Below, piece after piece: positions 14,180 through 45,673 of a stretch of 64,000 nucleotides of DNA. This stretch comes from Rebecca billardiae RCC1528 (taxonomy: Eukaryota; Protista; Haptophyta). The stretch covers positions 1,736,001-1,800,000 of the forward strand of contig OZ251222.1 of assembly GCA_965240325.2 (NCBI GenBank), in the 5' to 3' direction. The stretch's first letter is position 1. Each line of letters opens with the position of its first letter. A model generated the notes under the pieces. The model did no database searches. It saw nothing but the letters and a program-made list of their open reading frames with translations, and was not told the DNA's origin. The position numbers and the translations under genes are program-made.

Positions 14180-14299
14180 TTTTCGCGCGCTCGCGGCCGC
14201 GCTCGCGCGGCCGCGTGGCACCGTGTCCGGGCGTCCCACGCCCGCCCACCGGACCGTGTGTGCAGGTGGTGACTGGTGACTGTTTCAGCACTCGCGGCG

Positions 14300-17429: not shown

Positions 17430-17670
17430 CCTGACTGCGTGCAAGGCAAGGCGGCAGCTGCCACACCCGGCAAGAATAATGTTGCGAAGATGCTCGAGAG
17501 ACTTCGTCGCGAACTGCTGACCAGAACGAGAATCCGCGGGAAATCTTGCTGCTTGTTTCGTCAAGACAAAAAGAAGCTCGATGGCGCGGCGGAGGCGGCC
17601 GTGATCGGCATCCGCCCGTTTGTCTTTTTTCCAGTCGCGAGGTCGCGCATCTTCTGGACTGCGATTGGCG

Positions 17671-18519
17671 ATGGCGGCCGTCGGCTGCAGTGCATTGTTC
17701 GCATGCGCATACATCCTGCACGCGGCCGCTGCCGCGGCGGTTACGAGCGCCGGCCCGGCGAAGGCTTCGCTGCTCACGCGCATCGCAGACACTAATCGAG
17801 GCCTCGCCGCCGACGAGCGCTGCCGGGTGGACGTTTCCCAGCTGATCGACGAGCTTGTGGCGGCTCGAGAGCAGAGCCCGCTAGATGAGCCCGGCGCCCT
17901 GTCCGGCCGCTGGCGGCTCGTCTACACGGACTCAATGGCTGCCCTCGGAGCGAACAAGCCCATATGGCGCCGCCCGTGGGGCGACGTGCACCAGTGCGTC
18001 GATTTCAGCGCCGAGCCCTTCCTGCTGCAGAACCAGGAGGGGCCACCGCTCTTCACGACCGCGACCGCGCAGCTGCGGCGAGCGTCGGCAGAGTCGGCTG
18101 AGATGGAGGCCACCTTCGTCGAGATCAAGGCCTGCGGCATCTTTGAACTCCCCATCCCCGGCGACGGCCGCTATGGCACTGTCGAGTTCGCGTACGTGGA
18201 TGACGACCTGCTCATCTCGCGCGGCAACCGCGGGCACGTGTTCGTTCTTACTCGCACCGATGCGGCTGCCAGGCTGCCCCGCATCCGTCGAGACGGCGTC
18301 GGCTACTACGCCGGGCAGCGGTACTTCCGCGGCATGTTTGAGCGAGAGCTCGTGCCCACCACAGCCGACACCCTTAGTACCAGCGAGCGCGCTTGGCAGG
18401 CGACGGAGCGCGACAACCTGACGCCGAACCTGAAGGCAGCTGCGATGGCGACACTCAGCACAGCCGTGCTCACGGCGAGCTTTCTCGGCGCGAACGGACT
18501 GCTCCCCTTCCAGTCGTGA
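17671..18519 (+). CDS. PAP/fibrillin (plastid lipid-associated) family protein
   Basis: TNRGL..V.QLIDEL, LSGRWRLVYT, YVDDDLLISRGNRGHVFVL; N-terminal signal. Confidence 0.85.
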   Translation: MAAVGCSALFACAYILHAAAAAAVTSAGPAKASLLTRIADTNRGLAADERCRVDVSQLIDELVAAREQSPLDEPGALSGRWRLVYTDSMAALGANKPIWRRPWGDVHQCVDFSAEPFLLQNQEGPPLFTTATAQLRRASAESAEMEATFVEIKACGIFELPIPGDGRYGTVEFAYVDDDLLISRGNRGHVFVLTRTDAAARLPRIRRDGVGYYAGQRYFRGMFERELVPTTADTLSTSERAWQATERDNLTPNLKAAAMATLSTAVLTASFLGANGLLPFQS

Positions 18520-18846: not shown

Positions 18847-21800
18847 TCAAAGCCGATGATGATGATGCGTCGGATCCCACTGTTGGCGAGCAGACTCCGA
18901 CGAGGATGACTGATGCGGCGATGCCGCAAAGGCGGCCATCGCCTCATCAGCCGACGGCCCACCGGCCTCGCCTGGACCGCAGCCAGCGAGCGAGGGCGCC
19001 GCGTGGCACAGCACGCTGACGTCCACGCCATGCGAGCACGCGAGGCATTCCGCGGTGAGGGCAAGGCAGCACGCGCGCTTGGCGGCGACAGCCTCGCCGC
19101 CCAGCACGGCCGTCGGCAGCGCCCCCGGGTGGTGGCTGTCAGGCTTGGGCACGGTCGGAGGCATGCCATCCGTGGCGCCGCTGTGGGCGCGCCACGGCTG
19201 GATGACCGACGCGCTCACGACCGCGGCCGCGAGCAGCACCGCCGCGACGATGAACACGCCCACGGCCGTCGACGTGCGGCACCCGAGCTGCCCGCGCGCG
19301 CCGCCGACCGGCCACGAGCGAGTACGCAGCACGCGCGTCCCGCCGAACGCGCTGCGCTGCGCCTCCTCGCTCCGCTGCGCAGCGTGCGCCGCGCGGCGCA
19401 CGCCGCCGAGGAGCTCGGTGTCGGAGGCGCACGCGTCGGCCTCGGAGACGTCGGAGAGGGTGGTCTCGTCACGCCAGGCCACGGCGCCGCGCTGCCCGAC
19501 CGCGCGCTGACCGCCGCGCCCGCCCCCGAGCGAGCGCGCGCCGCCCGCCGCCGCGCCGCTGCCGCCACTCCCGCTCCGCTGACGGCTGACGCCGGCGAGC
19601 GGGTGGCCAGCCGCGTGCTCGCCACCGACGGTCTCCCGCAGGCGCAGGATGGTGTGCTCGTACCGCTTGAGCAGCAGCGACGAGCACACCACCGAGACCG
19701 ACGACGCCGCCATCGCCAGCCCGGCGAACATCGGCGGCAGCCGTAGCATGAACGCCGGATAAAAGACGCCCGCCGCAAGCGGAATCCCAACCAGGTTGTA
19801 GCCCATGGCCCAGCCGAAGTTGAGGCGGATCCGGGCGAGCACCGCGCGCGAGAGGAGGACGGAGACGAGCACGTCGGCAAGGGAGGAGCGCACCAGCACG
19901 ATGTCCGCCGCGTCGATCGCCACCTCCGTCCCCGAGCCGATCGCGATCCCCACGTCCGCCTGCGCGAGCGCGGGGGCGTCGTTGATGCCGTCGCCGACCA
20001 TCGCGACGCGCCCGCCGTCCTCCTGGTGCGCGCGCACGGCCATCGCCTTGTGCTTGGGGAGCACCTCGGCGTGGACGAGCGCGGGGTCGATGCCGAGCTC
20101 GCGCGCCACGGCGCGCGCCGTGCGCGCGTTGTCCCCCGTGAGCATGCCCACCGTCAGCCCCGCCTCGCGCAGCGCGCGCAGCACCGCCCACGCCTCACGC
20201 TTGATCTCGTCCTGGACGGCGACGATTGCGGCCGCGGCGCCGTCGACGCAGCAGAGGACGGCGGTCTTGCCGTCGGCCTCGAGCCCGGCCATGCAGTGGT
20301 CGACGGGGGCGGAGAGCGTCACGCCGTGCTCCGCGGCCCACTCGCGGTTGCCCAGCAGCACGCGACGCCCGTCCACCGCGCACGAGACGCCGCGGCCGAC
20401 CGAGGTGGCGTAGTCAGTCGGCGGCCGCAGCGGCAGCGGCGGCGCGCCGTGCGCCGCCGCGTGCGCGCCGCCGAGCGCGACGGCGCGCCCGCTGCCGCTC
20501 TCGGCGGCGGTGCGCAGCGCGAGCGCGATCGGGTGGTCCGAGTGCAGCTCGGCCGAGCCGATCAGCGCCCACAGCGTGCGCGCGTCCAGCTCGGCGCTCG
20601 ACGTGAGCCGTAAGAAGTCGCTCACGATCGGCCGGCCGACCGTGAGAGTGCCTGTCTTATCGAACAGGACGGTGGAGACGGAGCCGCAGGCCTCGAGGGC
20701 CTCGGCGGACTTGATGAGCACGCCGACGCGCGCGCCCACGCCCGTGCCCACCATCACCGCGGTCGGCGTCGCGAGCCCCAGCGCGCACGGGCACGCGATC
20801 ACGAGGACCGCGCAGCCGAACATGAAGGCGAACACACCTTCAGACTCGCGGAGGTGTGCGTGCGCATAGTAGTGCTCCGGCAGCGCGTGCAGCCCGACGG
20901 CGCCGAACCAGGCGGCCCAGGTGAGCACGGCGAGGAGCAGGACGACGGGGACGAACACAGCCGACACCGTGTCGGCGAACGCCTGGATCGGCGGCTTCGA
21001 CAGCTGCGCCGCCGAGACGAGCTGCGCGATCTTTGCGAGCGCGGTGTCGTCGCCCACCGCCTCCACGAGCGCAAAGACGGGCGCAGCGCCCACGTTGATG
21101 GCGCCGCCGACGAGCGCGTCGCCGAGGGCGCGGTGCACCGGCGTGAACTCGCCGGTCATCATCGACTGGTCGAACAGCGAGACCCCCGCGACCACGCGCC
21201 CGTCCGCCGGCGCCGCCGCGCCGGGAAGCACCTTGACAATGTCGCCAGCCTGCAGCAGGGCGACGGCGCACGGCTGCGCGCGCCACTCGGCCGCGCGCGC
21301 GGGCTCGGCGTCGGCGTCGGCGTCGGGCGGCTCGCAGAGCAGCGCGTGCTTGGGCGCGAGCGCGACGAGCGAGCGCAGCGCGTCCGACGTCTGCCGCTTC
21401 GCCGAGCACTCGAGCATCTTGCCGAACGAGACGAACGTAATCAGCATGGCGGACGTCTCGAAGAAGTGGGAGTCGTGCTCGAGCGCTGGCTCGTGCACGC
21501 CGCCGCCGTGCGCGTGCGCCGCCTCGGCGGGGCTGGCGGCGGCGAGCGCGGCGCGGCGCATGGAGGAGAGCACCGCGAGCGCCGAGTACACGTACGCCGA
21601 CGTCGTCGAGAGCGAGACCAGCACGTCCATATTCGCCGCGCCGCGCCGCACCGCCGCGAGCGCGCCCGTGTGAAAGTGCGCGCCGAGGCAGAACTGGACC
21701 GGCGTGGTCAGCACCCAGAGGAGCGTGGCGGTGAGCGTGAGCCCGGGGGCGAGCTCCGCGTGCAGCGCGGCGTGCGCGCCCGGGAGGTACGGCAGCAGCA

Positions 21801-22706
21801 TCGAGAGCGCGAAGATCGGCGCCGAGAGCACGGCGCACAGCGCGAAGCGCCGGCGCCATGTGCGGAGCTCGGAGGACTCCCGCGCGCCGCCTTCTGAAGA
21901 GCCGGCCGCGTCGGCGCCGCCCGGCGCGATCGTCGCGGTGAGCGCCTGCTGCGCCGCCGCCGCGGCGAGCACGGAGCGCAGGCCCGTCGCCTGCTTGTCG
22001 TACGTCAGGCGGATCAGGTGCGTGCGCGCCGCGTCCGCGTCCTCGTCCGCCGCGTGCGCCGCCGGCTCGCGCGCGGCCCCGTCCGTCGCGGCCACCGTGC
22101 GCGACGCGTGCGCCGCCGGGCCGAGCAGCGACACAGGGCAGCAGCACGCGCCGCGCTCGGCGTCGTACGGCGCGTCGGCGTCGGTCGTGGCGAGCCGCGT
22201 GTGCCCCGCGCGGCGCGGCGCGCAGCTGATCGCGTCCGCGGCGCGGTCACACAGCGTCTCCGCGTCGTCGGCGCGCGCGCCGCGCGCGGATGCCGGCTCG
22301 GCGCCGACGACGCCCGGGATGCGCGCGAGCGCGGCGCACGCGGCGCCGAGCTTCACGGGCGGGGCGTCGGGCGCGGGGCGGACGGCGAGCACGACGCTTT
22401 CGTGCGAGGTGCGCACGTGCGCGCACGCGTACCCCGCGCGCTGCACCGCGCGCTCCACGTCCGCCACGCGCGCGCTCTCGGCGTGCGGCGCCCCGGCGAC
22501 GTCAGCAAACGTCACCACCGCCTGCTCAGCGAGTAGCGAGACGCGCGCGCACGCGACAAAGGGCAGGGCCTCGACCGCGCGCTCGACGGCGCCGACGCAC
22601 GCGGCGCACGTCATGCCGGTGACGCTGAAGGTGAGCGGCGCGACGCGCGCGCGCGGCGACGGCTTCGGCACCGGGCTCGGCGCGCTCGCCGCCGGCGGCG
22701 CGCACA

Positions 22707-22738
<32 letters not shown>

Positions 22739-23700
22739 TGGCTGATCGGCATCGAGGCACTGGGCGCGGCCTCGGCCGCGAGCCACGCGGTGAAGCCGAC
22801 GCCCTGCGCGGCGCGCACGAGCGCGTCGACGGGCGCGCTGCCGCGCACGATCGCGGTGCCCCCGCCCTCGAGCGAGACCGTCGCGTCCGCCACGCCCGCC
22901 ACGGCCGCCAGTGCAGACTCGACTCGGCCGGTGCAATGGCCACAGGACATTCCGTCCACGCGCAGGACGCGCGTGGCCTCGGGCGCGCCGAGCGAGGCTT
23001 GGAAGCCGGCGTGCTCGACCGCGGCGACGAGGGCCGCGGGCTCGCCGCCGAGCACCTCGGCTGAGCTCGCCTCGAGCGAGACCGTCGCGTCCGCCACGCC
23101 GTCGACCGCGCGGAGCGCCGCTTCGACGCGCCCCGTGCAGTGGCCGCAGCTCATCCCCGCCACGCGCAGCACGCGCAGCGTGCGCGAGGGCGCGGCCGCC
23201 GGCGGGAGCGCGTCGGGCGGCGGCGGGGTGTCGGGGCCGGATACGCGCACGCGCGCCTCCTTGCCCGCGCGCGCCAACGCCGCGACCAGCGCGTCCGCGT
23301 CGGCCGAGCCGGTGACCATCGCCGTGCCCGCTTCGAGCGACACTCGCACGGCGTCCACGCCCGCGACGCCGCGCAGCGCCTCGTCCACGCCGGCCGAGCA
23401 GTGCGAGCACGTCATGCCGTGCACATCGAGCACAACGCAGCGCGGGGGCGGGCCGCCGGCGCCGGCCGGACCCTCGCTCGAAGGCGGCGCGCCCGCCCCG
23501 AGCTCGGACGCCGCCTTGCCAGCGCTCGCGACCGCCTCGATCAGCGCGCGCACCGCGGCGGTGCCGCCCACGGTGGCCGTGCCGGCGTCGAGGGAGACTG
23601 TCGCTTCTGACACACCCTCGACCGCGCGCAGCGCGTCCTCCACCGCCGCCGTGCAGTGGCTGCACGACATGCCGTCGACGCGGAGGACGACGACGGGCAT
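18847..23700 (-). CDS. Copper-transporting P1B-1 ATPase (CopA/ATP7/HMA5-like) with five HMA domains and a C-terminal extension
   Basis: GMSCSHC, GMTCSHC, GMSCGHC x2, GMTCAAC; TGE; CPCALGLATP; DKTGT; HP; TGDN; GDGINDAPAL; YN and MAASS Cu(I) ligands; single 1617-aa ORF. Confidence 0.95.
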
Positions 23701-24466: not shown

Positions 24467-26296
24467 ATGGTTCGGCCCATACGCGTGCTGTGCTTCACGT
24501 GGAACGTGGGCAACGCCGCGCCGCGCGAGGAAGAGCTTCCGCTCTGGCTGCCGGCGGGCGGCTCTGGCCTCGACATCGTCGCGATCGGCACGCAGGAGAA
24601 CGCGGGTTGGGACGGGCAAGATACCGGAGGGGACGGGAATGCGCTGCCCCCCCTCGAGCGCGCCGACTCGCGCGACTCGGTGGAGAGCGAGCACGCGGAG
24701 GTGCTGCGGCGAGCGAGCCTCGGCCACGTCCACACGCGCGGCATTGATCTCAAGGGCCTCGAGCGCATGGAGCAGAAGAAGCTGGGGAGCCGGCGGATGT
24801 CGGACTCGTCGGTGAGCGCATGGGACAGCATGATCCTCCGCCGCCTCGGCACGGCGTGGGTCTCGATCAAGAGCGCGGAGATGATGGGAATGAAGCTGAG
24901 CGTCTTTGTGCGCAAGGCCGCCGTCGAGCCCTCGATCGGCCACGTGATGGCGGCGCGCTCGGCGACGGGCGCCGCGGGCGGCCAGCTGGGGAACAAGGGC
25001 GGGCTGGCGATCTCGCTGTCGTACGGCCGCACCACGATGTGCTTCGTCTCCGCCCACCTCGCCGCGCACATGAACAAGCTCCTCGACCGCAACGACGACT
25101 TTTGGGAAGTCCTGCGCGAGACGCGCGACAAGATCGGCCCGGCGGAGCGCGCCGACCTCGCGCACTCGTTCGACCACGTCTTCTGGATGGGCGACCTGAA
25201 CTACCGCATCGACCTGGGGCGGAACACGCTGAAGGGGAAGAAGGACACCTCCACCGACGCCGCGGCCATCACCCAGCTCATCAACGCGAAGGAGTGGGAC
25301 ACGCTGATCAGCGCTGACCAGCTGCGGCTCTGCCAGGAGGAGGGGACGGCGTTCGTCGGCTTCGAGGAGGGCCCGGTCCACTTCGCGCCCACGTTCAAGG
25401 TGAAGCGGCAGGCAGGCCTGGCGTACCAGGAGAAGCGCGTGCCGTCGTACTGCGACCGGATCCTCTGGAAGTCGATGCCGCCGCTCGCGCGCCACGTGCA
25501 GCTCAAGGAGCTCAAGAGCGTGCCAGCCGTGAGCACGTCCGACCACAAGCCGGTCCTGGCGTCGTTCGCGGTCGAGCCGACGCCGATCATCCCGATCGCG
25601 CCCAAGTCGAGCCGGAGCCAGTACCCGCTGATACGGCTCTCGGGCGTGGACGTGCGGCTGCGCGGCGGCGCCATCGACTTCATGTCCTCGGCGTGCGACC
25701 CCTACGCCGTCTTCTACACCAACCCGCACGGCCTGCTCGGCGAGGAGACGCCGATGACGGCGGTCGTGCTGGGGCACAAGGACAAGGACGTGGAGGGCGA
25801 GGCGGCGCCGCCGCAGGCCGCCGACCGCTCGCCGAGGCCGAGCGCGCGCACGATGCACATGCAGCGGACGGTCTCGACGATGCGCTTCCAGGCGCCCGGC
25901 GAGCTCTTCCTCTACAAGTTTTGGTGGACCGACCGGCAGCTGCCGCTGCTCCGCCCGCGCGTGCAGAGCGCCGAGGAGCTGCAGGGCGTGACGCTGGTCG
26001 TCGCGATGTTCGACCACGACATCCTCACCGCCGACGACTCGCTCGGCACGGTGCTCATCCCGCTCAAGCGCCCCGTCGACGCGATCGGCACGCCGGACAA
26101 CTACTCGTTCGAGGTGGACACGCCCATCTCGTGGGAGCGCGGCGTGGGCAGCTTCAGATGCACGGTGACCGTCAGCTCGGGCGACGCGCTCAAGGACGCG
26201 CTGCAGCGCGCGCAGAGCGAGCGAGCGGGCACGCAGGCGAAGGTCTGGCGCGGCAAGCGCGGCTCCAAATGCGGCGGCCTATGCAGCGTGCAATGA
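24467..26296 (+). CDS. Inositol polyphosphate 5-phosphatase with C-terminal C2-like domain
   Basis: TWNVGN, IGTQE, GNKGG, FVSAHLAAH, FWMGDLNYRI, PTFK, PSYCDRILW, SDHKPV; later MFDHDILTADDSLG (C2); ends in CSVQ (possible CaaX). Confidence 0.93.
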   Translation: MVRPIRVLCFTWNVGNAAPREEELPLWLPAGGSGLDIVAIGTQENAGWDGQDTGGDGNALPPLERADSRDSVESEHAEVLRRASLGHVHTRGIDLKGLERMEQKKLGSRRMSDSSVSAWDSMILRRLGTAWVSIKSAEMMGMKLSVFVRKAAVEPSIGHVMAARSATGAAGGQLGNKGGLAISLSYGRTTMCFVSAHLAAHMNKLLDRNDDFWEVLRETRDKIGPAERADLAHSFDHVFWMGDLNYRIDLGRNTLKGKKDTSTDAAAITQLINAKEWDTLISADQLRLCQEEGTAFVGFEEGPVHFAPTFKVKRQAGLAYQEKRVPSYCDRILWKSMPPLARHVQLKELKSVPAVSTSDHKPVLASFAVEPTPIIPIAPKSSRSQYPLIRLSGVDVRLRGGAIDFMSSACDPYAVFYTNPHGLLGEETPMTAVVLGHKDKDVEGEAAPPQAADRSPRPSARTMHMQRTVSTMRFQAPGELFLYKFWWTDRQLPLLRPRVQSAEELQGVTLVVAMFDHDILTADDSLGTVLIPLKRPVDAIGTPDNYSFEVDTPISWERGVGSFRCTVTVSSGDALKDALQRAQSERAGTQAKVWRGKRGSKCGGLCSVQ

Positions 26297-30600: not shown

Positions 30601-30879
30601 GAGCATCGAGACCGAGCAGTCGGCCGTGGTCAAGGCCGTCTGCTCCACCCGAAGCTGTCGTCCCCATTCAGTAGCTGAGCCCGACATTCAGCTACTGATC
30701 GATGCTGAGTTCGTCCCAGAAAATTCGAGGCATTTTCCCGGCCCGTCTCCGGGCGCGCGGCGCAACGGACGCGTCCAGGGCCGGTCCTTGATTCCTTGGT
30801 CTGGCACCGGGCGCAGCGACAAGGCCGCACTCGGGACCCCAACCTCCACCGTCCACACGCGCCTCGTCTTCTCGCCGTC

Positions 30880-32382
30880 ATGCAGACGTCGTCGTGCCCT
30901 TTCACGTCAGAGGTGGTGACGAAGGCCTTCGACCCGTCGACGGCCGCGTACATCGAGGTGAGCTCGGACTCGAAGCTCTACGGCCTCGCCGTCCCGTACA
31001 TCGCACAGCACGCTGCCGACTCTGCGCCGCACTCGCGCCGAGTGGACGTCGTGGGCGGAGGGTGCCACTCGTCTGACGAGGACTCGGACAGCGACGAGGA
31101 GACTTCGCTCGCGTCGGATATGACGGTGGCCAAGACATGCGCGCGCCCCACCGCGCTCACCATCGGCCTTGGCCTCTTCCGCTTCTCCTTCGGCGGCGAG
31201 TCGGGTCTGCACGCGCTGCACGAGACGGTCGGCGAGCCGACGGCCAACGGCTGCGGCTCGGTCGACCTGTACACGCGGCTGGTCCTCTTCGCGCCCAAGA
31301 GTGCCGGCGGGCTCGAGCTGCTGCAGACGTTCTGCGACAAGCTCATCGCCGACTCCGAGCGCACGCGCTCGGGCACATTTGCTATCTTCCGATGGCAGAC
31401 TCGGCACCAGTACTGGCGGAGGCAGGTGCGCGCAAGCGCCCGGCCGATCGAGTCCGTCGTGCTCCCCGAGGTGACGAAGAGCAAGCTTGTCCACGATCTG
31501 GACAACTTCCTTTCGCCCAAGACCGCCAAGTGGTACCGCAAGCACGGCGTGCCGTACCGCCGCTCGTACCTCTTCCACGGCGTGCCGGGCGCGGGCAAGA
31601 CGTCTCTGCTTCAGGCGATCGCGGGGAAGTACGAGAGGAACCTCTGCTACGCGAGCCCGGCGCACCCCGACGTGACGGACGACGCGCTGAAGACGGCCGT
31701 GCAGAGCACGCCCTCGCAGTCGCTCCTCGTGCTCGAGGACATCGACGCGCTCTTCACCAAGGGGCGCACGGCCAAGGACGGAAAGTCGCCGCTCACCTTC
31801 TCCGGCCTGCTCAACGCGCTCGACGGCGTCGGCGCCGCGAACGGCCAGCTGATCGTGCTCACGACCAACTTCCGCAACCAGCTGGACGACGCGCTGATCC
31901 GCCCGGGCCGTGTGGACATGCACATCGAGTTCGGCTACGCCACCGCCGAGCAGATGGCGATGCTCTTCGGCCAATTCTATCCGCACGCGGCCACGACCGA
32001 CGCCCAGGCGTTTGCCGAGCGCACCACCGCCGCGCTCGCCGGTCGCGACGTCGCCATGTGCGCGCTGCAGCACTTCTTCATCATGTCGCGCACGCGCTCG
32101 CCCACCGAGGCCATCGAGAGCGTGCACGAGATCGTCGAGGAGCTCCAGACCAAGCAGTCGGATGGCGCCGCCGAGGCCGCGCCTGCGGCTGAGGACGACG
32201 ACGCCAAGACCGGCAAGACGGCCAAGGCGAAGAAGGCTGCGAAGAGCAAGTCGAGCAAGGCGGCTGCGCGCGCTCCGCCACCGGTGCACGTGCACGTGCA
32301 CCTCCCGGGGGCTGCCAGCGCCGCGGATGGCGATGCCGACGACGGTGCGGATGGTTCGGCCAACGAGTCTGAGAGCGAGTGA
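30880..32382 (+). CDS. BCS1-like AAA ATPase
   Basis: RPIESVVL, GVPYRRSYLFHGVPGAGKTS (Walker A), LVLEDIDA (Walker B), LTFSGLLNALDG, LTTN, LDDALIRPGRVD. Confidence 0.92.
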   Translation: MQTSSCPFTSEVVTKAFDPSTAAYIEVSSDSKLYGLAVPYIAQHAADSAPHSRRVDVVGGGCHSSDEDSDSDEETSLASDMTVAKTCARPTALTIGLGLFRFSFGGESGLHALHETVGEPTANGCGSVDLYTRLVLFAPKSAGGLELLQTFCDKLIADSERTRSGTFAIFRWQTRHQYWRRQVRASARPIESVVLPEVTKSKLVHDLDNFLSPKTAKWYRKHGVPYRRSYLFHGVPGAGKTSLLQAIAGKYERNLCYASPAHPDVTDDALKTAVQSTPSQSLLVLEDIDALFTKGRTAKDGKSPLTFSGLLNALDGVGAANGQLIVLTTNFRNQLDDALIRPGRVDMHIEFGYATAEQMAMLFGQFYPHAATTDAQAFAERTTAALAGRDVAMCALQHFFIMSRTRSPTEAIESVHEIVEELQTKQSDGAAEAAPAAEDDDAKTGKTAKAKKAAKSKSSKAAARAPPPVHVHVHLPGAASAADGDADDGADGSANESESE

Positions 32383-33036: not shown

Positions 33037-34470
33037 TCATAGCTCGGCCCCCTCGTCAAGCTGTACCTGCAGCTGCAGCAGCGCCGCCAGCCTCGTCGCC
33101 GACTCACGCGTGTCGGCGTGGGCGGAGCCCAGCTGCTGCTCGCGCCCCTCGAGCGCCTGCCTATACAGTGCCTCCGCATCTGCCCACCTGCCCTGCACCT
33201 GGCGCAGCTCAGCCAAGCGGTGCACGGTGGTGAGCGTGCGGGCATGCTCGGCACCGAGCCGCTCTGCCTGCCCGTCTCGAGCGCGCAGGAGCAAGGCCTC
33301 CGCCTCCTCGAGCTTGCCCCGCTGCCTGAGCAACAGCGCGCCCAGGGCACTCGAGGAGGCGAGTGTGCTCGGGTTCGCCGCGCCGAGCAGTTGCTCCTTG
33401 CCCTCAAGCGCTCGCCTGAGCAGCGGCTCCGCCTGGTCGAGCTTGCCCCGGCTCAGCAGAAGCATGCCCAACTCGCCCATTGATTGGAGCGTCGTCTCGT
33501 CCGAAGCGCCCGGCTGCCCCTCGTCTGCCGCCACAGCACGCCTGAGCAGCGGCTCCGCATCATCCAGCCTGCCCTGGGCGTGCAGCAGGCCGCCGAGGCT
33601 GCTCGCGGAGGCGAGCGTGTCGTGGTGCGTGGCACCCAGCTGTTCCTCGCGCGCCTCGAGCACGCGCCTGAGCAGCGGCTCCGCCTCATCCAGCCTGCTC
33701 TGCTCGGTGAGCAACGTGGCAAGGTTGCTGATCGCAACCAGAGTGTCGACGTGCTTGGCGCCCATCTCCGTCTCGAGCAGCTCGAGCGCGCGCCTGAGCC
33801 GCCCCTCCTCCTCGTGCAGCGGCGGCCCGTCGCTCGCCGAGAGCTGCACCACCTCATGCAGCTCGTTGCCCACCTGCTTGCCCGCTAGGCGCAGATCGTT
33901 CAGTAGCTCTCCGAGCTTGCGTTGCGAAAAGGCTGGTAGCTCCCCGGCGCGCAGCACGACGCCAAGAACTTCGGGCGCAAGCAGCAGCTGCTTCATGAGG
34001 GCGTGGTGCTCCCAGTTGTAATAAATCGGGGCGGCGTGCACGCCAGACGCGATCGCCGCGTTGGCGATCGCGACCGCGTCGGGCGCATGGCCGTACGCGT
34101 CGCGCCCTGCGGCGCCGCGAGTCTCGACAACATACACGATCGCTGGGCCCAGCCGCGTGGGCTGTGGCGCGAGGCACTTGTCCGCAGGCGCGTCTGTCGG
34201 GTAGAGCGTGCCCACTAGCGCGCTCGGGATGGCGACGTCCGGGATGATGTCCGTGCGCGAGGCCATAGCGGGTGTGACGATCGAGAGCGATGGCTGCGGT
34301 AGTCGGCCGTGACCCACCGGCACCTGCCCGTGCGGGTGCGGCAGGTGCACATCGTTGGCACTTTCTTCGCACGCGGCACGCAGCACCTGCGGACCATGAA
34401 ACGACCGCGTGTTCATGAGCTGAGCCACCAACGAAACAACCGCGCGGTTGAAGACAGTCAGTGTCAGCAT
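33037..34470 (-). CDS. Cj0069-like N-terminal domain fused to kinesin-light-chain-type TPR repeats (start uncertain)
   Basis: VVETRGAAGRDAYGHAPDAVAIANA...YY...VVLRAG resembles the Cj0069 family N-terminus; about five 42-aa repeats GRLDEAEPLLRRALE..EQ.LGA.H.DTL. Confidence 0.75.
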   Translation of the reverse strand: MLTLTVFNRAVVSLVAQLMNTRSFHGPQVLRAACEESANDVHLPHPHGQVPVGHGRLPQPSLSIVTPAMASRTDIIPDVAIPSALVGTLYPTDAPADKCLAPQPTRLGPAIVYVVETRGAAGRDAYGHAPDAVAIANAAIASGVHAAPIYYNWEHHALMKQLLLAPEVLGVVLRAGELPAFSQRKLGELLNDLRLAGKQVGNELHEVVQLSASDGPPLHEEEGRLRRALELLETEMGAKHVDTLVAISNLATLLTEQSRLDEAEPLLRRVLEAREEQLGATHHDTLASASSLGGLLHAQGRLDDAEPLLRRAVAADEGQPGASDETTLQSMGELGMLLLSRGKLDQAEPLLRRALEGKEQLLGAANPSTLASSSALGALLLRQRGKLEEAEALLLRARDGQAERLGAEHARTLTTVHRLAELRQVQGRWADAEALYRQALEGREQQLGSAHADTRESATRLAALLQLQVQLDEGAEL

Positions 34471-34654
34471 TGAACGACGTCGACAGGCAGTAGGATGGAC
34501 AGAATAGAATGTACACAAAGCGACCACAGTCGCGATAGGAAGGCAATGCCGCCGTCGTCTCGGAAGTCGGAGCAGTGCAAAGTCGCGCTGCCACGGTAGC
34601 GCTGCCACTGCGGTCCGAAGCAGCCCGCTTGCGCCTCGCAGGCGTCGTGGCAGC

Positions 34655-37189: not shown

Positions 37190-37337
37190 CGCCGACCTCC
37201 CGAGTCGGCCCGAGCTCGGCCGCGCGCCGTCGCGGGCGCAGGCCGGATTTTTTTTAAGTCAAGTCCAAGTCCGGCTCCTGGGACCTGGCTCCCCGTCCCC
37301 ACGGCCGCGCCCAGGGCGTGTGTGTCACTTCCTTGCG

Positions 37338-40300
37338 ATGGCGAGCGAGATGAACGCGCCGCGGACGGTGATCGCCGTGATGCGCTTCGACGACCGGAAC
37401 AGGTACGGCCAGAACGGCATCCCCGCAACGGTGCTCTTCTCCGGCGGCCGCAAGATCGTCGTGCGCATGAAGGACGGCACGATCGAGAAGGCGGGAAAGC
37501 GCAACCGGTTTGCAAAGGTCGAGCTGGCGGACGAGAGCGCGCCCGAGGCGCGGATGATCGAGCTGCTCGGGCTCGTGGGCGAGTACGCGTCGGAGCTGGA
37601 GGCGTACCAGCTCCACTTCGGCATCAAGCCGTGCCGCTACCCGCCCCCCCCGGACTGGCAGCTCCTGCCCGCCGACGCAGCGGCCGCAGAGCGTGTCGAT
37701 CGCACCGACCTCGACGTCTTCTCCGTCGACAACGCGAGCACGCGCGACATCGACGACGCGCTCTCGTTCGAGTTCGACGGCGGCGTGCCCTCCGCCGGTG
37801 GCGCCCCCGCGTCCGCCGGCTGCACTATCGGCATCCACGTCTCCGACGTCGCCTCGCGCGTGCCGTGCGCGTCTCCGCTGTACGCGTGGGCGTTTGCGCG
37901 CGCCAGCTCGGCCTACCACCACGGCATCGGCGGCGAGCACGGCGCGGGCTCGGTGCCGATGCTCCCGCCGCAGCTGGCGCACGACGAGCTCTCGCTCAAC
38001 CAGGGCGTCCGTCGCAACGCGCTCTCCCTCTTCCTCCGCGTCGAGCGCGGCGCGGTCGTGAGCCGCGCGCATGCGCGCACGACGATCGTGAATCGGAACG
38101 CGACCACCTACTCGGCGTTCGAGGCGGACGAGACGGCGGCGGCGGCGGCGGCGCGCGCGGTGCTCCGCGCGCTGTCGGGCGCGCACGAGGCCGACGAGCT
38201 CATCGCGTGGGCCATGATCGAGTACAACAGCTACTTTGGCGGCCTGCTCGCGTCGGCCGCGGAGACGGCCGCCGCGGCCGCCGCGGCCGGCGTCGCCGTC
38301 GACTCTGCGGTCGGGCTGCTGCGCGCGCAGCCCGTGGCGGGCGTGCGCGCGGAGTACGTGCTCGCGGCCGAGGGCAGCGCGGCGGCGTCCGCCGTGCACG
38401 CCTCGCTCGGCCTCGTCAACTACGCGCACTGCTCCTCGCCCATCCGCCGGTACTCGGACCTGCACAATCAGCACGCGCTTCATCGCTCGCTGCTCGGCGC
38501 GCCGCCCGGCTGCGCTGTCGTGGACGCGCGCACGCTCGGCGCGTTCAACGCGCGCGCGTCGCAGGTGGCGCACTACCACGCAATGACGAGCGCGATGGAG
38601 CTCGCCTACCGCTGCCGCGAGGCGCCGATGCTCTTCCGCGGCGTCGTCGAGGCCGACGAGGACGGCACGTGCCTGCGCGTGAACACGGACTATGGCCGTG
38701 TGCGGGTGCCGCTTCGGGACACGTACTTCGCCGAGCCGCTCGCGCAGCTGTTCGCGCGGATGGGCGGCGAGGCCGGCGCGCGCGGGCAGCACGCCGAGAT
38801 CGAGGTCGAGCTGTGCGGCCTGCTCAAGTCCGGCCGCACGCAGCTGCGCCTGCGCGTGCCCTCCGTCAGCGCCGCCGCGATTGCGCCTGGCGCGCGGCTC
38901 GGCGGCCGCGCCGATGACGCCGACGACGCCGACGACGCGGAGGGCGAGGGCGGCGCGGATCCGGGCGCGTCGGGGCTCGAGTCGCTGTGCGCGACGCTCG
39001 CGGACATGGGCGTCTCCGAGCGCGCGCTCACCGCGCTGCGCAGCCCGGACCTCGGCGGCCTCGCCCGCGTGCGCGGCCTGTCGCCGACCGACCTGATCGA
39101 CGCTTGCGGGTGTGAGCTCGATGAGGCGAGGCTGATCGCCGACGTGTGCGCGTCGGTGGCGGCGGCGGGCGGCGGCGAGGGCGGAGCCGGCGGCGGCGGC
39201 GAGCCCCCCCCGCCGCCCCCGCCGCCGCCGCCGGACGCCGACGCGGGGGCCCAGTCCGGGCCGCCCGGCGAGTCCGGGGAGTCCGGGGAGTCCGGGGAGT
39301 CCGGGGACCACGACGAGCTGCAGGAGTTGTACCTGAGTGGCCTCGGCGTGAGCCGGCAGACGATCGACAGGCTGGCCGAGTACGGGATCGGCTCGGAGGC
39401 GCTGCGGCTGCTCTCGGCGGCGGACATCGAGGACCTCACGGGCTGCTCGCTCGAGGAGGCGCGCGCCATCTCCACCGGCACGCGCGTCGGCGCGCCCGAG
39501 CCGGCGCGCGCGGCCGCGGCCGCGGCCGCGCTGCTCGCGCAGCCCGCACCGCCGCCCGGCCTGCCGCCGCCTCCTGGGCTGGCGGCGGCGGCGCCGCCCG
39601 GGCTCGCGCCGCACGCGCGGCCGCCGGCCGGCGGCGCCGCGCCGCCGGACTCTCCCCTCCTCGAGTCCGACGTCAACGCCGTCCTCGGCTACCCGATCGA
39701 CGACTTCCAGCGTCGCTCGCTCGCGGTGATAGTCGACCCGGGGCGTGACTTGCTTGCGATGGCGCCGACCGGCTCGGGCAAGACGGCGGTGGCGCTGATG
39801 GCGATCCTGCAGGCGTTCCGCCGGGGGAAGCGCGCGGTGTACACCTCGCCGATCAAGGCGCTCTCCAACCAGAAGTACTCCGAGTTCAAGTCGTGGTTCG
39901 CGCGCCGCGGCCTCGACGCGGGCGTCACGCTGCTCACAGGCGACATCAAGATCCGAGCGCCGCCCGGCACCGCGCGCGAGCTGATCATCTGCACGTCGGA
40001 GATCCTGCGCAACAAGCTCGTGCGCGCGGCGGGGCAGGACAACGCGGCGGCGCCGGCGCCGCTGCCGCCCGCGCTCGCCGGCGCCGCGCCCGCCCCCGCC
40101 GCCGACCTCGACCTCGACGATCTCGGCGTGGTGATCTCGGATGAGATTCATTATATTAACGACGTCGAGCGGGGCTCGGTCTGGGAGGAGACTTTGATGC
40201 ACCTGCCCGAGCCGGTGCAGATGGTGGCGCTCTCGGCGACGCTGCGCGAGCCCGAGCGGTTCCTCGGGTGGATCTCCCGCGCGCGCCGCCGGCCGGGCGA

Positions 40301-40611
40301 GCTCGTCCGGCGCACCGACCGACACGTGCCCCTTCATGTTGGCGGTCTCGAGCGCAAGGGCAGCCGCTTCGTCGAGTATTTCGGCACGCACGGAGAGCGG
40401 CGCGGAACGTTCGAGAGAGCAAAGTTCGAAGCGCTGTACGCGCCGCTGCTCGACTCGGCGGCGCCGGGGCAGGTGGAGAGCGCGGCGGCGGCGGCGGCGG
40501 CGGCGCACCGGCACGGCCGCGACCGCGAGAAGGAGGCGCAGCGCGCGGCGTTTGCGGGCGGCGGCGGCGGCGGCGGCGGGCGCGGCGGGCGCGGCGGCGG
40601 GCGCGGCGGGC

Positions 40612-40657
<46 letters not shown>

Positions 40658-42963
40658 AGGCGGCGGCGGAGGCGGTGGGCGTGGCGGGCGCGGCGGCGCG
40701 CGCAGCTCGGGCCCGCCCGCGATCAGCTACACGGGCGAGTGCCACAAGCTTTCTCGCGCGCTGCTGCAGTCGTCCAAGCTCCCGGCGATCGTTTTTTGCA
40801 TGTCGCGCAAGCGGTGCGTCGAAGGAGCGCACGCGGTCGCGCAGCTCAACCTGCTGACGGGGCAGCGCGTCGCGGCGGACGGCTCGGGCGACGTGGAGGG
40901 CAAGCCGCCCGAGGAGGCGGAGGAGCTCGCCCGCTGGGAGCGCGCGCGCGAGAAGAAGCGCGCCGCCGCGCGCGCGAACGAGCGAGCGCGCGCCGCGATG
41001 CACCGAGCGCACCTGCAGCGCTATATGCCCGAGCTGGGCGAGCTCGAAGCCTACTCGGACATCATGGGCTTGCTGGCGCGCGGCGTGGCGTACCACCACG
41101 GAGGTGGGCGCGCGCGGGGGAGGGCGCGCGCGGGAGGGCCCGCCGACGCGCGCGCAGCGGCGCGCGTGCATCCGCTCGCCGCCCGCCGCCCACGCCGCGC
41201 ACGCCCTCTCCCTCTCCTCAACTGCGCGCGCGCCCAACCCCCCCCCCCGGCCCCCTGTGTATGCCCTCGCTCCGCCGCCCCCGCCACCCGCCGCCTCGGC
41301 AGGCATGCTGCCCATCCTGCGCGAGTTCGTCGAGCTGTGCTTCCAGCAGAAGCTCGTCAAGCTCGTCTTCGCCACCGAGACGCTCGCAGTCGGCGTGAAC
41401 ATGCCCGCGCGCACTGTCGTCTTCTCCCAGCTGGACAAGCCGAACGACGGCACGCTGCCCGGGCACCGCCCGCTCCGGCCGGACGAGTTCTGGCAGATGG
41501 CGGGGCGCGCGGGGCGGCGCGGCATGGACGAGCTCGGCTACGTGGTCTACGCGCCGACGCTCTCGGTGGCCGGCCTGCGCAACATGAGCTCGGCGAACGA
41601 GGTGGGCGAGATGCTGACCGGACAGATGCCCGCCGCCACCTCGCAGCTCGTCGTCGACCGGCCGTTCGTGCTGCGCCACCTCGCGCGCGGGTACGGCGTG
41701 GACGTGCTCTCCCGCACACTCCTCGCCGACCAGCTCACGCGCCAGACGGCCGCGCTCGAGCGCGAGCTGCACGCGGCGGCGGGCGGCTCGGAGGGCGGCG
41801 CGGAGGCGGTGATGGCCGCGGCGCACGAGCTCGCCTCGCTCGAGAAGAAGCTCAACGGCGAGGCGGAGAGCGCGCCCGGCATCAGGCTCAGCCTGAGCAA
41901 GCAGGCGCGGCGCGACGCCGAGGCGCGCGCCGCGCAGCTCCGCGACACGTACGGCGCGGAGCGGCTCGACACCCTCGCCAAGACGGCGGCGCGCTCGGCG
42001 CACCTCGCCGACTCCATCGAGACCAACCGGACTCTGCTCTCGGGGCAATGGCACCAGGCTGTGGAGTGGCTCAGCGAGTATGGCTTCCTGGAGCCGCCCG
42101 CCGCCGCCGCCGGCGGCGCGGAGGGCGGCGGCGCGGGCGCGGTGCCGCGGCTCAGCGCGCGCGGCCGCTCATGCGCCGCGTTCGCGGACGGTCAGCCGCT
42201 CATCATCGGCACGATCATCGCGGACGGTGCGCGGCGAGACCCGCGCGCGCGCATGCGGCGCCCTCGCGCGGCGTCGCTCGCCGCTGCGAGCGCGCGCGCT
42301 GCGCTGCCCACGCCCGCCTCACGCCCCCTCCCGAACGGTCACCGCGCGCGCGCATCCGCCCCACCCGGCGCGCCGCTCCCGCCGCCTGCCCGCCACAGGC
42401 TGGCTGCGCGAGCTGAGCCTGCCCGAGGTCTGCGCGTGGCTTTGCCTTTTCCTCGGGGACATGCGCAAGCTCGACATCTCGGGCTCGGACCTGCAGCCGC
42501 CGAAGCTGTCGGCCGCGCTCGAGGCGGCGTTCCACGAGACGTACAACCTCGCCGCCATCCTCGAGGTGCGTTCGCGCGCCGCGCGCACGCCGCCGGGCGC
42601 GCGGGCGGCGCGGCTCGGGAGTGGGCGCGTGCGCGCCGCGCCGCGTTGCGAGCCGAGCGGCGCGCTGTGGCGCGACCGGCGCGCGGCGTGCAGGTCGAGC
42701 TCGACCACAACCTGTCGCTCATCATGCTCGACTGGTGCACGCACAAGGACATCAAGCGCGTCGCGTACTGGGTGGACGCCCACCTGCTCGGCTCGTTCGT
42801 GAAGGCGGTGATGCGCGTCGTGTCGTACGTCGACGTCGTGCGCGAGGTGCTGCTCGGCCTCGGCGAGTACGAGACGTACAACAGGCTGGACAACCACATG
42901 GACACGCTGCTCGGCGGCCTCGTCACGAATGAGAGCCTGTACCTCCGCCTCTCCGATGTATGA
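37338..42963 (+). CDS. RNase II/R (RNB) domain - SAM/HhH-like repeats - Ski2-like DExH helicase fusion; exons 37338-41103, 41303-42226, 42399-42565, 42694-42963
   Basis: RNB: [46 protein letters not shown]. Ski2: [78 protein letters not shown]. Confidence 0.92.
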
Positions 42964-43885
42964 ATCATCGGAACTCTCATCATCGGGTCCTTCATCAGTA
43001 GCGGGAGTTCAGAATTACCGCTGTGAGCCTGAGTCCGTGTCCGAGTGCGGAGTGTCACTCGGCACTCCGGTGAGTGGTCGTGTGTGACTGTGAGAGTGTG
43101 ACTCGGCTTAGAATGACTCCTCCAATGACACTCAGTCACTACATACGTCCGTACTCGTAGCTACGACGGCTTAGCTCGGCAATACGGCTTGAGTAAAAAA
43201 AGTTCTGATGGAGTTAACGGACTAATAATGAGTAATGTCGTCGGACTATGTGAACTACTAGTCTTTTAAAAATGATTATTCTACTATACTATGATTTAAG
43301 TATGTACATAGTGATCGTCGCCGATGCTGATCACACGGAGGCAGTAGGTGCCCAGGGATGCCGCTGAAGCCTATTTGCAGTCGTCGCCGGCCTTGGTCAT
43401 CATGTAGTAATCGGCACGCCGTCGACCGACAGGGTCCGACTCGCCTCCGAGTAGTCCGACTGGCCGTGTCAGTCGCCAGTCGGGTTGAATGGCACCGTGG
43501 TGCAGATAGTGGATGGGGTCGCCCCGGCCGGAGTGCGCGGCCTTGGTCTTGCCGAGGTGCGGAAGTAGTCGCCCTTGCCGTTGAGGAAGTCGTCGCCCTG
43601 AGGAAGTCGTCTGAGATCATCACGGTTTTATTCCCGCATGTCCTCTGCAGCCGGACGGGTCTCGCGTCCGGACTCCTTCCGCAGTCGATTTCTAGTTCGG
43701 CAGCGATGGCGGTCGTCAACTCGCGGTCGACGGGCTGTCCGCACATCCAAGAGTAGGCGAGTTGATCGTGGCCAGCCGAGTCCGGTGGCGGGGCCGCTGG
43801 GCGTGGCCTCCTCTACCTTCTTGATCGCAGTCCGCGTGTCTTGGGCGGCCAAGCTCGCGCCCGGCCGAACCCGGAGCCGGCGACC

Positions 43886-45673
43886 ATGGATGACGAGGCG
43901 GAGCGTGTGGCGTGCGCATGCTGCGACTTCCTCGCACGCTACGGCGGGATCGGCGAGTTCTTACCGAACGACTTCTTCACGACGGAGCACTGGCAGACGC
44001 GCCTCAGCGCATCCGCGCGAGCCTCGCTGCTCGCCACGCCGCTCGACGAGCTCGTCGCGCGCGTGGTCGCGCCCGAGGGCGCGAGCGCGGGCGCGCCGGC
44101 CGCGGCTGGCCACGACGAGCGCTCCCACGCTGGCCCCCACAGCGAGGTGCTGGACGACCCCTTCGAGATGATCCGGGCCAGCCATCGCTGTCGGCTGCGC
44201 CCGTCACTCGCGCTCTCCGTCGAGGAGTGGCGCTCGCAGCGCGGCCTCGCGCCCGCGCCCGAGCGCGCCGAGCGCGCCGCCGAGCAGCACGAGCGCCACC
44301 TCTCCCTGCTGAGCGCGAAGAAAGCGCACGAGGTGCGTCGGCTCGCGTGCCTCGTCGACGCGCTGGCCGAGCTCGCTCCGCGCGGCGGGAGGGAGGGCGT
44401 GCACGTCGTCGACGTCGGCGCGGGCAAGGGCTACCTCGGCAGCTACCTCTCGCTCGCAGCAGGCATGCGCGTGACCTCGGTCGACGGCCGCGACGCAAAC
44501 GTGTGCGGCGCGGCGCGTCGGCACGCGCTCGTCGCGCGCGCGCTCGGCCGCGCGCCGCAGCACGGCGGCGCGCGGCACGACGTGCGCCTCGCGTGGCTCG
44601 ACCGCTCCTCGGCCGAGCTCGCCGCTGGGCGGGGCACTGCGCGCGAGGGCGACGGCGACACGACCGAAGCAGCCCCCGCGCGCGCCGCTGCGGACCGCCG
44701 CCGGGCCGCGGCAGCGCCGGCGGAGGCGCCGGCGGCCGCAGAGACGGGTGCGATCATTCTCACCGGCCTGCATGCGTGCGGGGACCTAACCCCGACCCTG
44801 CTGCACTCGTTCGTGTGCAGCCCGCGCGCACACGCGCTCGCGGTGGTTGGCTGCTGCCTGCAGCTCATGGGTGAGACGGGCGGCTTTCCCCTCTCGGCAC
44901 ACGTCGCCGATTACTTGCGGTCGCGCGGGCTGACCGGCCCGCGCCTGCTCAGCCGGCGGCTCCGCCTGCTCGCCGCCAAGGCGCCGGCGCGCGAGGCGGG
45001 CCGCGGGGGTGCGCCCGTGGCGGGGGCACACGCGGCTGGCCAGGCGAGCGGCCGGGGTGGCGCGCGCGCGCGCACCGGCCCGGCGATCGATCACGACGGC
45101 ACCCCCGCAGCCGCCGCCGCCGCCGCGGCCGCCCCCGCTGCCGACGGCGGCAGGGCTGCGCTGTCGGGCGACGAGCGCGCGCTGTGGCGGCCATTGCTCT
45201 CGCTGGTCCTCTGGGAGCGGTTCGGCGTGCGCGAGGCGGCGGAAGAGGACGGCGTCGCGGCTGGGCGCGCGGACGCGGACGCGCACGCGCAGGCCGGCGG
45301 CTCCGGCGCGCAGCAGCGGCAGGCAGCGGTGCGCGTCGGCAAGCTCGCGCGCAAGTGCGCCAGCTTCTCAGAGTTTGCGCGCCGGGCCGTCGAGAAGCTC
45401 GGCGTCGGCGACCCAGCCGCGGCGGGGACGGACGACGAGCTGAGCGCGCTCGCGGCCCTCGGCATGCAACGCGCCGCCGAGCTGCACCGCCTCGAGGCGC
45501 TGCGGCTCGCGTGCGCGCCGGTCATCGAGGCGCTCGTCGCGCTCGACCGGCTGCTCTTCTTGCGCGAGAGCGCGGGCTGCACGGGCGCGTGGCTGGTGCG
45601 TGCCTTTGACGAGGCGGTCTCTCCGCGCGCGCTCGCGCTCGTCGCCATCAGACATGTCGAGTGTCCCCCGTGA
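43886..45673 (+). CDS. METTL25-like SAM-dependent methyltransferase (Methyltransf_32)
   Basis: KKAHEV, VVDVGAGKGYL, GLHACGDLT, VGCC, EALVALDRLLFLRE, FDEAVSPR. Confidence 0.88.
   Translation: MDDEAERVACACCDFLARYGGIGEFLPNDFFTTEHWQTRLSASARASLLATPLDELVARVVAPEGASAGAPAAAGHDERSHAGPHSEVLDDPFEMIRASHRCRLRPSLALSVEEWRSQRGLAPAPERAERAAEQHERHLSLLSAKKAHEVRRLACLVDALAELAPRGGREGVHVVDVGAGKGYLGSYLSLAAGMRVTSVDGRDANVCGAARRHALVARALGRAPQHGGARHDVRLAWLDRSSAELAAGRGTAREGDGDTTEAAPARAAADRRRAAAAPAEAPAAAETGAIILTGLHACGDLTPTLLHSFVCSPRAHALAVVGCCLQLMGETGGFPLSAHVADYLRSRGLTGPRLLSRRLRLLAAKAPAREAGRGGAPVAGAHAAGQASGRGGARARTGPAIDHDGTPAAAAAAAAAPAADGGRAALSGDERALWRPLLSLVLWERFGVREAAEEDGVAAGRADADAHAQAGGSGAQQRQAAVRVGKLARKCASFSEFARRAVEKLGVGDPAAAGTDDELSALAALGMQRAAELHRLEALRLACAPVIEALVALDRLLFLRESAGCTGAWLVRAFDEAVSPRALALVAIRHVECPP

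Follow-up and report, generated by a model that had tools for sequence, protein, structure and literature searches.

Which enzyme does an alga make, and from where did it obtain the gene, when an RNB exoribonuclease and a Ski2-like helicase share one reading frame? The question is raised by a forward-strand gene at positions 37338 to 42963 of a 64,000-nucleotide stretch of Rebecca billardiae RCC1528, a haptophyte (GenBank assembly GCA_965240325.2, contig OZ251222.1, forward-strand positions 1,736,001 to 1,800,000; this whole stretch is the window below). The gene has introns and is resident in the host genome. Taken as a whole it is probably best explained as the single-chain, host-resident form of a helicase and exoribonuclease module of giant viruses, which would have been captured from a virus, domesticated, and used to unwind and degrade RNA independently of the exosome. 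Its activity, the direction of its transfer and its cellular role are what we infer from the comparisons that follow.

The coding sequence of 5127 nt runs from an ATG (37338-37340) to a stop codon ending at 42963 and specifies a protein of 1708 amino acids (aa) after removal of three introns by homology-guided splicing (tblastn with the relatives P0001 and P0004; Table 1). The nuclease-helicase junction falls inside exon 1, where Pfam RNB and DEAD both match a single open reading frame (ORF), and Helicase_C matches in exon 2. A long stop-free frame is weak evidence at the 76% GC of the gene region, because the antisense strand also holds an ORF of 1423 aa (37254-41525, minus strand, ATG-started); this antisense ORF is most likely a compositional artifact, given the GC content of the region and a sense third-position GC above 0.9. 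The coding signal itself is continuous: third-position GC stays at 0.92-0.98 in the exon 1 frame in every 150-nt window from 37338 to ~41100, linker (38.9-39.7 kb) included, while 5' of the ATG there is no periodicity, and at each intron the signal passes into the frame that the gene model predicts. Residues restored at all three junctions agree with the homologs, the codon across intron 1 restoring AYHHGGMLP where the homologs read AYHHSGMLP, and of the 102 columns that are invariant in an alignment of 24 family members the spliced protein keeps every one.

In the nuclease half, Pfam PF00773 (RNB) scored 106-109 bits against a cut-off of 29.3 bits (E about 3e-31 to 2.8e-30). All four aspartates of the DxxxxxDxDD motif are present (aa 131-140, nt 37728-37757), three of them invariant and one nearly invariant among 19-24 family members, and the SP-RR residues of SSPIRRY (aa 366-372, nt 38433-38453) are likewise invariant. 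Domain limits were transferred by alignment from an AlphaFold model of P0032, a compact fused relative of 1185 aa, built from the 24-sequence alignment and confident as a whole (predicted local distance difference test, pLDDT, 85.9; predicted template-modeling score, pTM, 0.76). It is laid out as an OB barrel (residues 1-56), RNB (93-345), a second barrel (351-408), a tether, RecA1, RecA2, a winged helix, a stalk (915-1016) and a ratchet. The two barrels thus flank RNB in the homolog's model; in the window protein itself Pfam matches neither CSD nor S1, and Pfam OB_Dis3 matches at the corresponding place in a stand-alone viral RNB protein. Pfam gave no PIN match even at E up to 1. The RNB half is divergent, with DIS3L1, Rrp44, DIS3L2 and RNase R all matching at ~1e-14. 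By its sequence it looks like an RNase II/R-type hydrolytic 3'-5' exoribonuclease with an intact catalytic center.

The helicase motifs read PTGSGKT (39765-39785), DEIHY (40140-40154), SATL and, at the end of exon 1, VAYHHGG, with GSGKT, DE-H and SAT among the family-invariant residues. Pfam DEAD matched with E 1.5e-25 (90 bits). A search of PDB sequences with this half returned Ski2 at 1e-63, Mtr4 at 1e-55 and Hel308 at 1e-31; by fold (Foldseek) Mtr4 was best at 1e-38, and Mtr4, FRH and Ski2 spanned 1e-38 to 1e-30. PF08148 (DSHCT) is present in full-length homologs and in the split viral helicase; the short window pieces by themselves gave no Pfam match. A stalk occupies the place of the Mtr4/Ski2 arch, and no KOW barrel is predicted there, the P0032 model having four long helices and no strands. 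In viral members the helicase half is ~750 aa, compared with ~1000 or more in Mtr4 and Ski2. Sequence and fold together make this half look like a Ski2/Mtr4-type DExH (SF2) helicase whose catalytic center is intact.

The linker between the halves is 245 aa long in the window protein, where P0032 has a disordered tether of 17 residues. It carries two copies of a ~55-aa repeat, also found in P0001, P0011, P0076, P0010 and P0016, which AlphaFold folds into five helices (pLDDT 87). The best fold matches are the RadA/Rad51 N-terminal domain and the (HhH)2 domains of UvrC and XPF, with a template-modeling score of ~0.7 and a root-mean-square deviation (rmsd) of 1.5-2 Å at weak Foldseek E values of 0.2-2; a Pfam search of the linker returned nothing, so that the fold is known from the repeat alignment and AlphaFold alone. 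These (HhH)2-like domains are confined to one algal subgroup. Within the helicase a (GCG)n array of ~72 copies (40482-40698) encodes an RGG-like loop, at whose place pelagophyte homologs have G/K/R-rich stretches and viral members a short loop only. The (HhH)2 nucleic-acid-binding domains and the RGG-like loop are gains of the lineage of the window, where they probably add substrate grip or localization.

A first-pass annotation of the window had already read one stop-free exon bearing both domains, a join that did not depend on splice prediction, four catalytic aspartates with SPIRRY, and Ski2 motifs of which V and VI follow a GT-AG intron; it had reported neither a PIN domain nor an obvious targeting peptide. 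These readings hold, the last in that the protein has no extension beyond the common start of its family. The intron it claimed is confirmed, but it missed the two later GT-AG introns, and its picture of the gene included neither the two linker domains nor the likely viral origin. The exosome-independent mechanism of unwinding and decay and the surveillance role that it put forward are proposals here as well.

The fused architecture is not a one-off. A word-indexed search with exon 1 returned 17 proteins at E 1e-99 or better, nearly all with RNB and helicase domains; those with names come from pelagophytes and comprise CTAYLR_001776 of Chrysophaeum taylorii (1410 aa), one protein of Aureococcus and P0008, an MMETSP transcript that is complete (1434 aa). 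When 1.84 billion representatives were searched exhaustively with HMMER, further fused proteins of 1170-1333 aa came up as a second tier, 33-45% identical and with the same Pfam architecture. Database labels for the family are generic ('RNA helicase', 'hypothetical protein'). One fused protein, P0033, lies on a dense, intron-free 24-kb contig, and fused ORFs occur on contigs of giant-virus metagenome-assembled genomes (L001 and L003-L008, the latter six from an IMG/VR scan in which at least 583 stretches encode helicase relatives).

In most viral relatives the two enzymes are separate genes. We surveyed 82 loci with one HMM per half against all six-frame ORFs and found 8 fused and 74 helicase-only loci, half of the latter (37/74) with a stand-alone RNB ORF of 440-620 aa within 8 kb of the helicase. 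The RNB gene is downstream of the helicase in 37/37 paired loci and abuts or overlaps it in 13, of which 11 are tail-to-tail and two (L028 and L029) head-to-tail with a 4-nt overlap. In the latter two (L028 6056-9785, L029 9938-13667) the genes are on the same strand with helicase preceding RNB, the reverse of the order in the fused protein. NCLDV (nucleocytoplasmic large DNA virus) major capsid protein, Rpb1, PCNA, ribonucleotide reductase, dUTPase, A22-type resolvase and DUF5767 are among the families common to 10-16 of the surveyed loci, and by these shared NCLDV genes the loci are truly viral. One fused locus, L004, also holds a four-domain MutS (ORF 14995-17691) and an RPE65-type carotenoid oxygenase (ORF 1420-2646). 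A structure search of BFVD found separate RNB proteins in CroV, Bodo saltans virus, CeV, Homavirus, Harvfovirus and Yasminevirus, and helicases in a Megaviridae environmental sample and CeV. The giant viruses concerned are, on these sequences, Nucleocytoviricota related to mimiviruses, which appear to carry the two-gene module very widely. The series from split to fused forms supports a Rosetta-stone argument, namely that the two viral proteins work together.

A further BFVD entry, A0A0N9R1K5 (CeV-01B 'DEAD-like RNA helicase', 1234 aa), gives an alignment of 1355 columns with the fused model (E 9e-40, rmsd 34) and may be a fused homolog in a cultured haptophyte-infecting virus; CeV also has a separate RNase II protein of 559 aa.

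In the window the gene sits among ordinary cellular neighbors (Table 1), and GC is 60-77% across the window. One marker, the lysyl-tRNA synthetase, makes a Pavlovales haptophyte the probable source of the window; a pelagophyte, first suggested by the named homologs in Aureococcus and Chrysophaeum, was rejected on that single gene. Because the fused gene has spliceosomal introns, host-like GC and such neighbors, we regard it as domesticated in the alga. ORFs of the viral loci found no match in the window outside the gene except one generic match at 31.5-32.0 kb, to the BCS1-like AAA ATPase ORF. A giant endogenous viral element was considered and rejected on account of the cellular neighbors, the three introns and the host-like GC.

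As the first-pass annotation had proposed, separate phylogenies were computed for the two halves, with bacterial RNase R as the root of the RNB tree. The two half-trees are congruent; each of them, like the concatenated tree, gathers the fused proteins in a single clade separate from the split viral pairs. The same split-pair sub-clades recur in both half-trees, and the two genes have therefore been inherited together. Stand-alone RNB genes of viral contigs are sister groups of the window nuclease half in the RNB tree. The algal proteins nest within the fused clade, beside P0024 and P0029/P0034, and an approximately unbiased (AU) test rejected forcing the non-algal fused proteins into one clade (p = 0.0004, a cost of 50 log-likelihood units). 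Contigs of the nearest non-algal relatives are dense and intron-free (L085 33% GC, L083 60%, L086 56%). A mixture-model tree with more algal members grouped the window with L089 (97/93) and the pelagophytes in one clade (100/100); P0001, which also has the (HhH)2 linker, is the row nearest to the window and L089 and is not resolved into their clade. Transfer of an NCLDV exoribonuclease gene to Selaginella has been described (PMC4083422). Among the contigs just named, L083 (GCA_046766315.1, JBJNWD010013175.1; 9.4 kb, with dense ORFs) bears the fused P0029 near the algal clade and may represent either a virus of high GC content or an endogenous copy.

Several observations weigh against capture from a virus as a self-sufficient RNA-decay module. 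The outgroups of the trees did not include cellular Ski2, Mtr4 or Dis3; the group constrained in the AU test was chosen after a tree had been seen; and the nearest non-algal relatives (P0024, P0029, P0034, P0048) were judged viral from their dense, intron-free contigs alone. The mixture-model tree does not resolve the order among the (HhH)2-linker sequences, the pelagophyte clade, P0024 and P0029/P0034, and this base of the algal groups therefore settles neither one against two acquisitions nor the direction of transfer. In at least 14 helicase-only viral loci whose flanks are complete, an RNB gene is absent for 9 kb around the helicase. Finally, (HhH)2 domains usually bind DNA.

The phylogenetic points give some room to the opposite direction, in which the fusion was born in an alga and giant viruses acquired it on more than one occasion. 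Capture of host genes is frequent among such viruses, the origin of the closest non-algal sequences is uncertain, and the base of the group is the part that the mixture-model tree leaves without order. We nevertheless consider this direction unlikely, since the split pair occurs widely in viruses, in conserved synteny, and falls outside the fused clade as its outgroup in either half-tree, since several deep viral-contig lineages (L001, L003-L008) fall inside the fused clade, and since the named cellular holders are the pelagophytes and the pavlovophyte-like window only. Transfer from virus to alga is the more parsimonious direction on the sequences compared, not a proven one, and the gene most likely entered the algae from a giant virus that already had the fused form.

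For the enzyme we propose a mechanism whose steps derive from the Ski2/Mtr4-exosome and Suv3-Dss1 systems (reviews PMC5818665, PMC9181182). The helicase would load onto a 3' single-stranded tail, and ATP-driven 3'-5' translocation would melt structure or strip proteins; the freed 3' end, on leaving the helicase, would then enter the RNB channel without an intermediate, and processive decay would reduce it to mononucleotides. The logic would be that of Ski2-exosome-Rrp44 or Suv3-Dss1, with no exosome barrel required. More tentatively, and at somewhat less than even odds, mimivirus-like viruses may possess their own exosome-independent 3'-5' RNA degradosome, which would have been fused in one viral lineage, taken up on one or two occasions by marine algae (pelagophytes and pavlovophyte haptophytes), and retained by them as an active enzyme, possibly against viral or aberrant RNA. 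For the viral module, possible targets are transcripts of the host, early transcripts of the virus, and double-stranded RNA (dsRNA) produced by convergent transcription. The algal enzyme may serve general RNA turnover or surveillance of viral and transposon RNA.

The similarity of the helicase half to the exosome helicases Ski2 and Mtr4, greater than to any other, could instead mean that the helicase feeds the host exosome and that the attached RNB is auxiliary or regulatory. We find this improbable: the RNB half has no PIN/CR3 tethering part and its catalytic residues are conserved, while the helicase has an arch without a KOW barrel and no N-terminal region for binding Ski3 and Ski8. The conserved pairing and repeated linkage of these two viral genes likewise argue for a self-sufficient pair and not for an exosome cofactor.

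Slightly less probable again is that the substrate is hybrid or DNA-linked RNA, such as R-loops or replication-transcription conflicts in virus factories, in place of RNA in general decay. Weaker fold and profile matches to the DNA helicases Hel308 and Pol-theta, the resemblance of the linker domains to the DNA-binding (HhH)2 of RadA/Rad51, UvrC and XPF, and the replication genes among the viral neighbors are all consistent with such a substrate. RNB enzymes, however, hydrolyze RNA. The match to Ski2 far exceeds that to Hel308, NCBIfam Hel308 scored far below its cut-offs, the (HhH)2 domains occur in only one algal subgroup, and the helicase has the DSHCT ratchet domain typical of RNA helicases.

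An organellar degradosome, analogous to the Suv3-Dss1 mitochondrial exoribonuclease (mtEXO) or to a plastid RNase R/ISE2 pair and fused in the algae, would have the RNB plus DExH logic in common with the window protein, and DEXQc_Suv3 gave a weak match (only 29.2 bits against a 27-bit cut-off). A pelagophyte-group homolog, P0006, has a ~200-aa N-terminal extension (residues 1-206) before the common start, interpretable as a targeting sequence or as a start codon called in the wrong place. This alternative is nonetheless very improbable, since the window protein starts at most ~10 residues from the common start of the family, viral members included, so that a signal or transit peptide would not fit, and coding periodicity begins at the ATG. 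The DEAD and Ski2/Mtr4 matches are far above that to Suv3, and the relatives are viral and not bacterial, with NCBIfam scores under cut-offs. Because the N-terminal targeting extension is absent, a cytoplasmic or nuclear site is probable for the enzyme.

That two adjacent genes (RNB, then helicase) were read through a GC-rich, stop-poor spacer, or joined in a chimeric assembly as the first-pass annotation had considered, is scarcely credible even though the region is GC-rich enough to hold the long antisense ORF, one Aureococcus annotation splits the ortholog and most viral relatives are truly split, because the third-position signal runs in a single frame through a linker with two folded, conserved domains and because the fused ORF recurs in L087, L088, L089, Chrysophaeum, a 1386-aa Aureococcus model, the MMETSP transcript P0008 and many viral contigs. 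Of these independent sequences, L087 and L088 (73% GC, two assemblies) hold one uninterrupted ORF matching aa 157-1707 of the window protein, and L089 (67% GC, adjoining a dynamin gene) carries the junction from RNB through linker to helicase within a single exon, with an intron elsewhere.

The principle of a helicase joined to an RNB nuclease is already known; the covalent Ski2-like-RNB form and the link between giant viruses and algae are new. Ski2-Ski3-Ski8 or Mtr4 with the exosome and Rrp44/Dis3 (DIS3L) has both enzyme families, the 3'-5' polarity and the presumed 3'-end hand-over in common with the window protein, but there the enzymes are separate proteins bridged by a nine-subunit barrel, whereas here they are covalently joined. 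Rrp44 bears PIN and CR3 tethering; the window RNB half, lacking PIN, begins by the homolog model with a short OB barrel. In Ski2 and Mtr4 the arch bears a KOW barrel, whereas the window family is modeled with a helical stalk only. A second system is mtEXO (Suv3 and Dss1), likewise a minimal helicase and RNB machine without an exosome barrel, whose helicase feeds the RNB channel (review PMC9181182). It differs in being two polypeptides with a Suv3-family helicase in mitochondria, and Dss1 has a different N-terminal build. HELZ2, which is metazoan and interferon-induced, is also a natural single chain joining an active RNB exoribonuclease to helicase domains (PMC10516660), but its helicases, as the first-pass annotation had also noted, are UPF1-like SF1 enzymes; they are of unrelated lineage and flank RNB, whereas the window helicase is an SF2 DExH enzyme C-terminal to RNB. 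RNase R and the RNase R-RhpA and PNPase-RhlB degradosomes likewise combine a 3'-5' exonuclease with unwinding to degrade structured RNA in bacteria (PMC5714204, PMC8136821). RNase R, however, unwinds without a helicase domain, and the bacterial partners are DEAD-box and not processive Ski2-like helicases; the window family scores far below the NCBIfam cut-off for RNase R. A prokaryotic origin was rejected on the NCBIfam Hel308 and RNase R scores, all far below their cut-offs.

The stand-alone RNB genes of giant viruses (CroV, PgV, OLPV, CeV, BsV, klosneuviruses) are annotated solely as exoribonucleases, and in open-access papers and preprints we found no description of an RNB-Ski2 fusion, of the giant-virus helicase partner or of the conserved pairing; the HELZ2 paper (PMC10516660) does not mention an RNB-Ski2 fusion. 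The first-pass annotation, which knew of no characterized fusion of this kind, is borne out on that count. Its single gene has become a family, not found described, with fused members in pelagophytes, the pavlovophyte-like group and giant viruses.

A natural chain of ~1200 aa with both enzyme families would be a minimal system for the hand-over of a 3' end to a nuclease. Work on helicase-coupled 3'-5' RNA decay normally deals with large assemblies: Ski complex/exosome/Rrp44, TRAMP/NEXT-exosome and Suv3-Dss1. Giant viruses would gain an unremarked RNA-turnover module, with host shut-off, temporal switching of transcript classes and dsRNA clearance as candidate roles, and the gene would be a clear case of domestication of a virus-type gene in two ecologically important algal groups.

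Table 1. Features of the fused gene and its neighbors in the window (positions in the window; +, forward strand; -, reverse strand)
Feature	Position	Strand	Content	Basis
Exon 1	37338-41103	+	ATG, nuclease half, linker, RecA1, first part of RecA2; aa 1-1255	Stop-free; tblastn with P0001 and P0004
Intron 1	41104-41302	+	GT-AG, 199 nt	Junction matches homologs; third-position GC frame shift
Exon 2	41303-42226	+	Remaining RecA2 (motifs V, VI), winged helix, helical stalk, ratchet start	Pfam Helicase_C; tblastn, 63% identity to P0001
Intron 2	42227-42398	+	GT-AG, 172 nt	Homology-guided; P0001 reads VIADRWLDQLAPGEICAWLC across the corresponding junction
Exon 3	42399-42565	+		tblastn match in frame 2; third-position GC signal in the same frame
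Intron 3	42566-42693	+	GT-AG, 128 nt	Homology-guided splicing
Exon 4	42694-42963	+	DSHCT-type ratchet end and stop codon	72% identity to P0001 C-terminus
N-terminal OB (cold-shock-like) barrel	37338-37574	+		Beta-barrel residues 1-56 of P0032 AlphaFold model, alignment-mapped
RNB catalytic domain	37710-38612	+		Pfam RNB; motif residues conserved in family
S1-like beta-barrel 3' of RNB	38628-38858	+		P0032 model strands 351-408, alignment-mapped; no Pfam match
Linker	38859-39650	+	Low-complexity except two ~55-aa (HhH)2-like domains, 38982-39149 and 39321-39485	
RecA1	39651-40391	+	Motif I 39765-39785, motif II 40140-40154, motif III 40233-40244	Pfam DEAD
Gly/Arg-rich (RGG-like) insertion between RecA1 and RecA2	40557-40697	+		Translation
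RecA2, split by intron 1	40740-41625	+	Motif VI 41494-41523	
Winged helix and four-helix stalk	41626-42078	+		P0032 model helices 915-1016, without strands
Helical ratchet/DSHCT, split by introns 2 and 3	42088-42945	+		Pfam DSHCT in homologs, alignment-mapped
Lysyl-tRNA synthetase	12515-14239	-		Best named matches Diacronema lutheri and Pavlovales sp. CCMP2436, 73-74% identity
Neighbor ORF	18847-23700	-	Copper P-type ATPase, five HMA domains	
Neighbor ORF	24467-26296	+	Exo_endo_phos2, inositol-phosphatase-like protein	
Neighbor ORF	30796-32382	+	BCS1-like AAA ATPase	
Neighbor ORF	33037-34608	-	TPR protein	
Neighbor ORF	43841-45673	+	Methyltransf_32 methyltransferase	

An Rfam search of the window returned no matches. 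The gene models of Aureococcus anophagefferens differ among annotations: one assembly gives the 1386-aa protein KAH8097958.1 (P0430), another annotation splits the ortholog into KAK7241046.1 ('RNB domain-containing protein') and KAK7241045.1 ('RNA helicase'; P0428/P0429), and a third model, JL722_387 (1184 aa), omits part of the helicase. Two Aureococcus paralogs were considered and rejected, the tree showing that P0012 and the P0002/P0430 cluster are one gene with differing models. A close relative of the RNB half, P0015 (911 aa), carries Pfam MMR_HSR1 (GTPase) and no helicase domain, and is either another fusion or a gene-model artifact.

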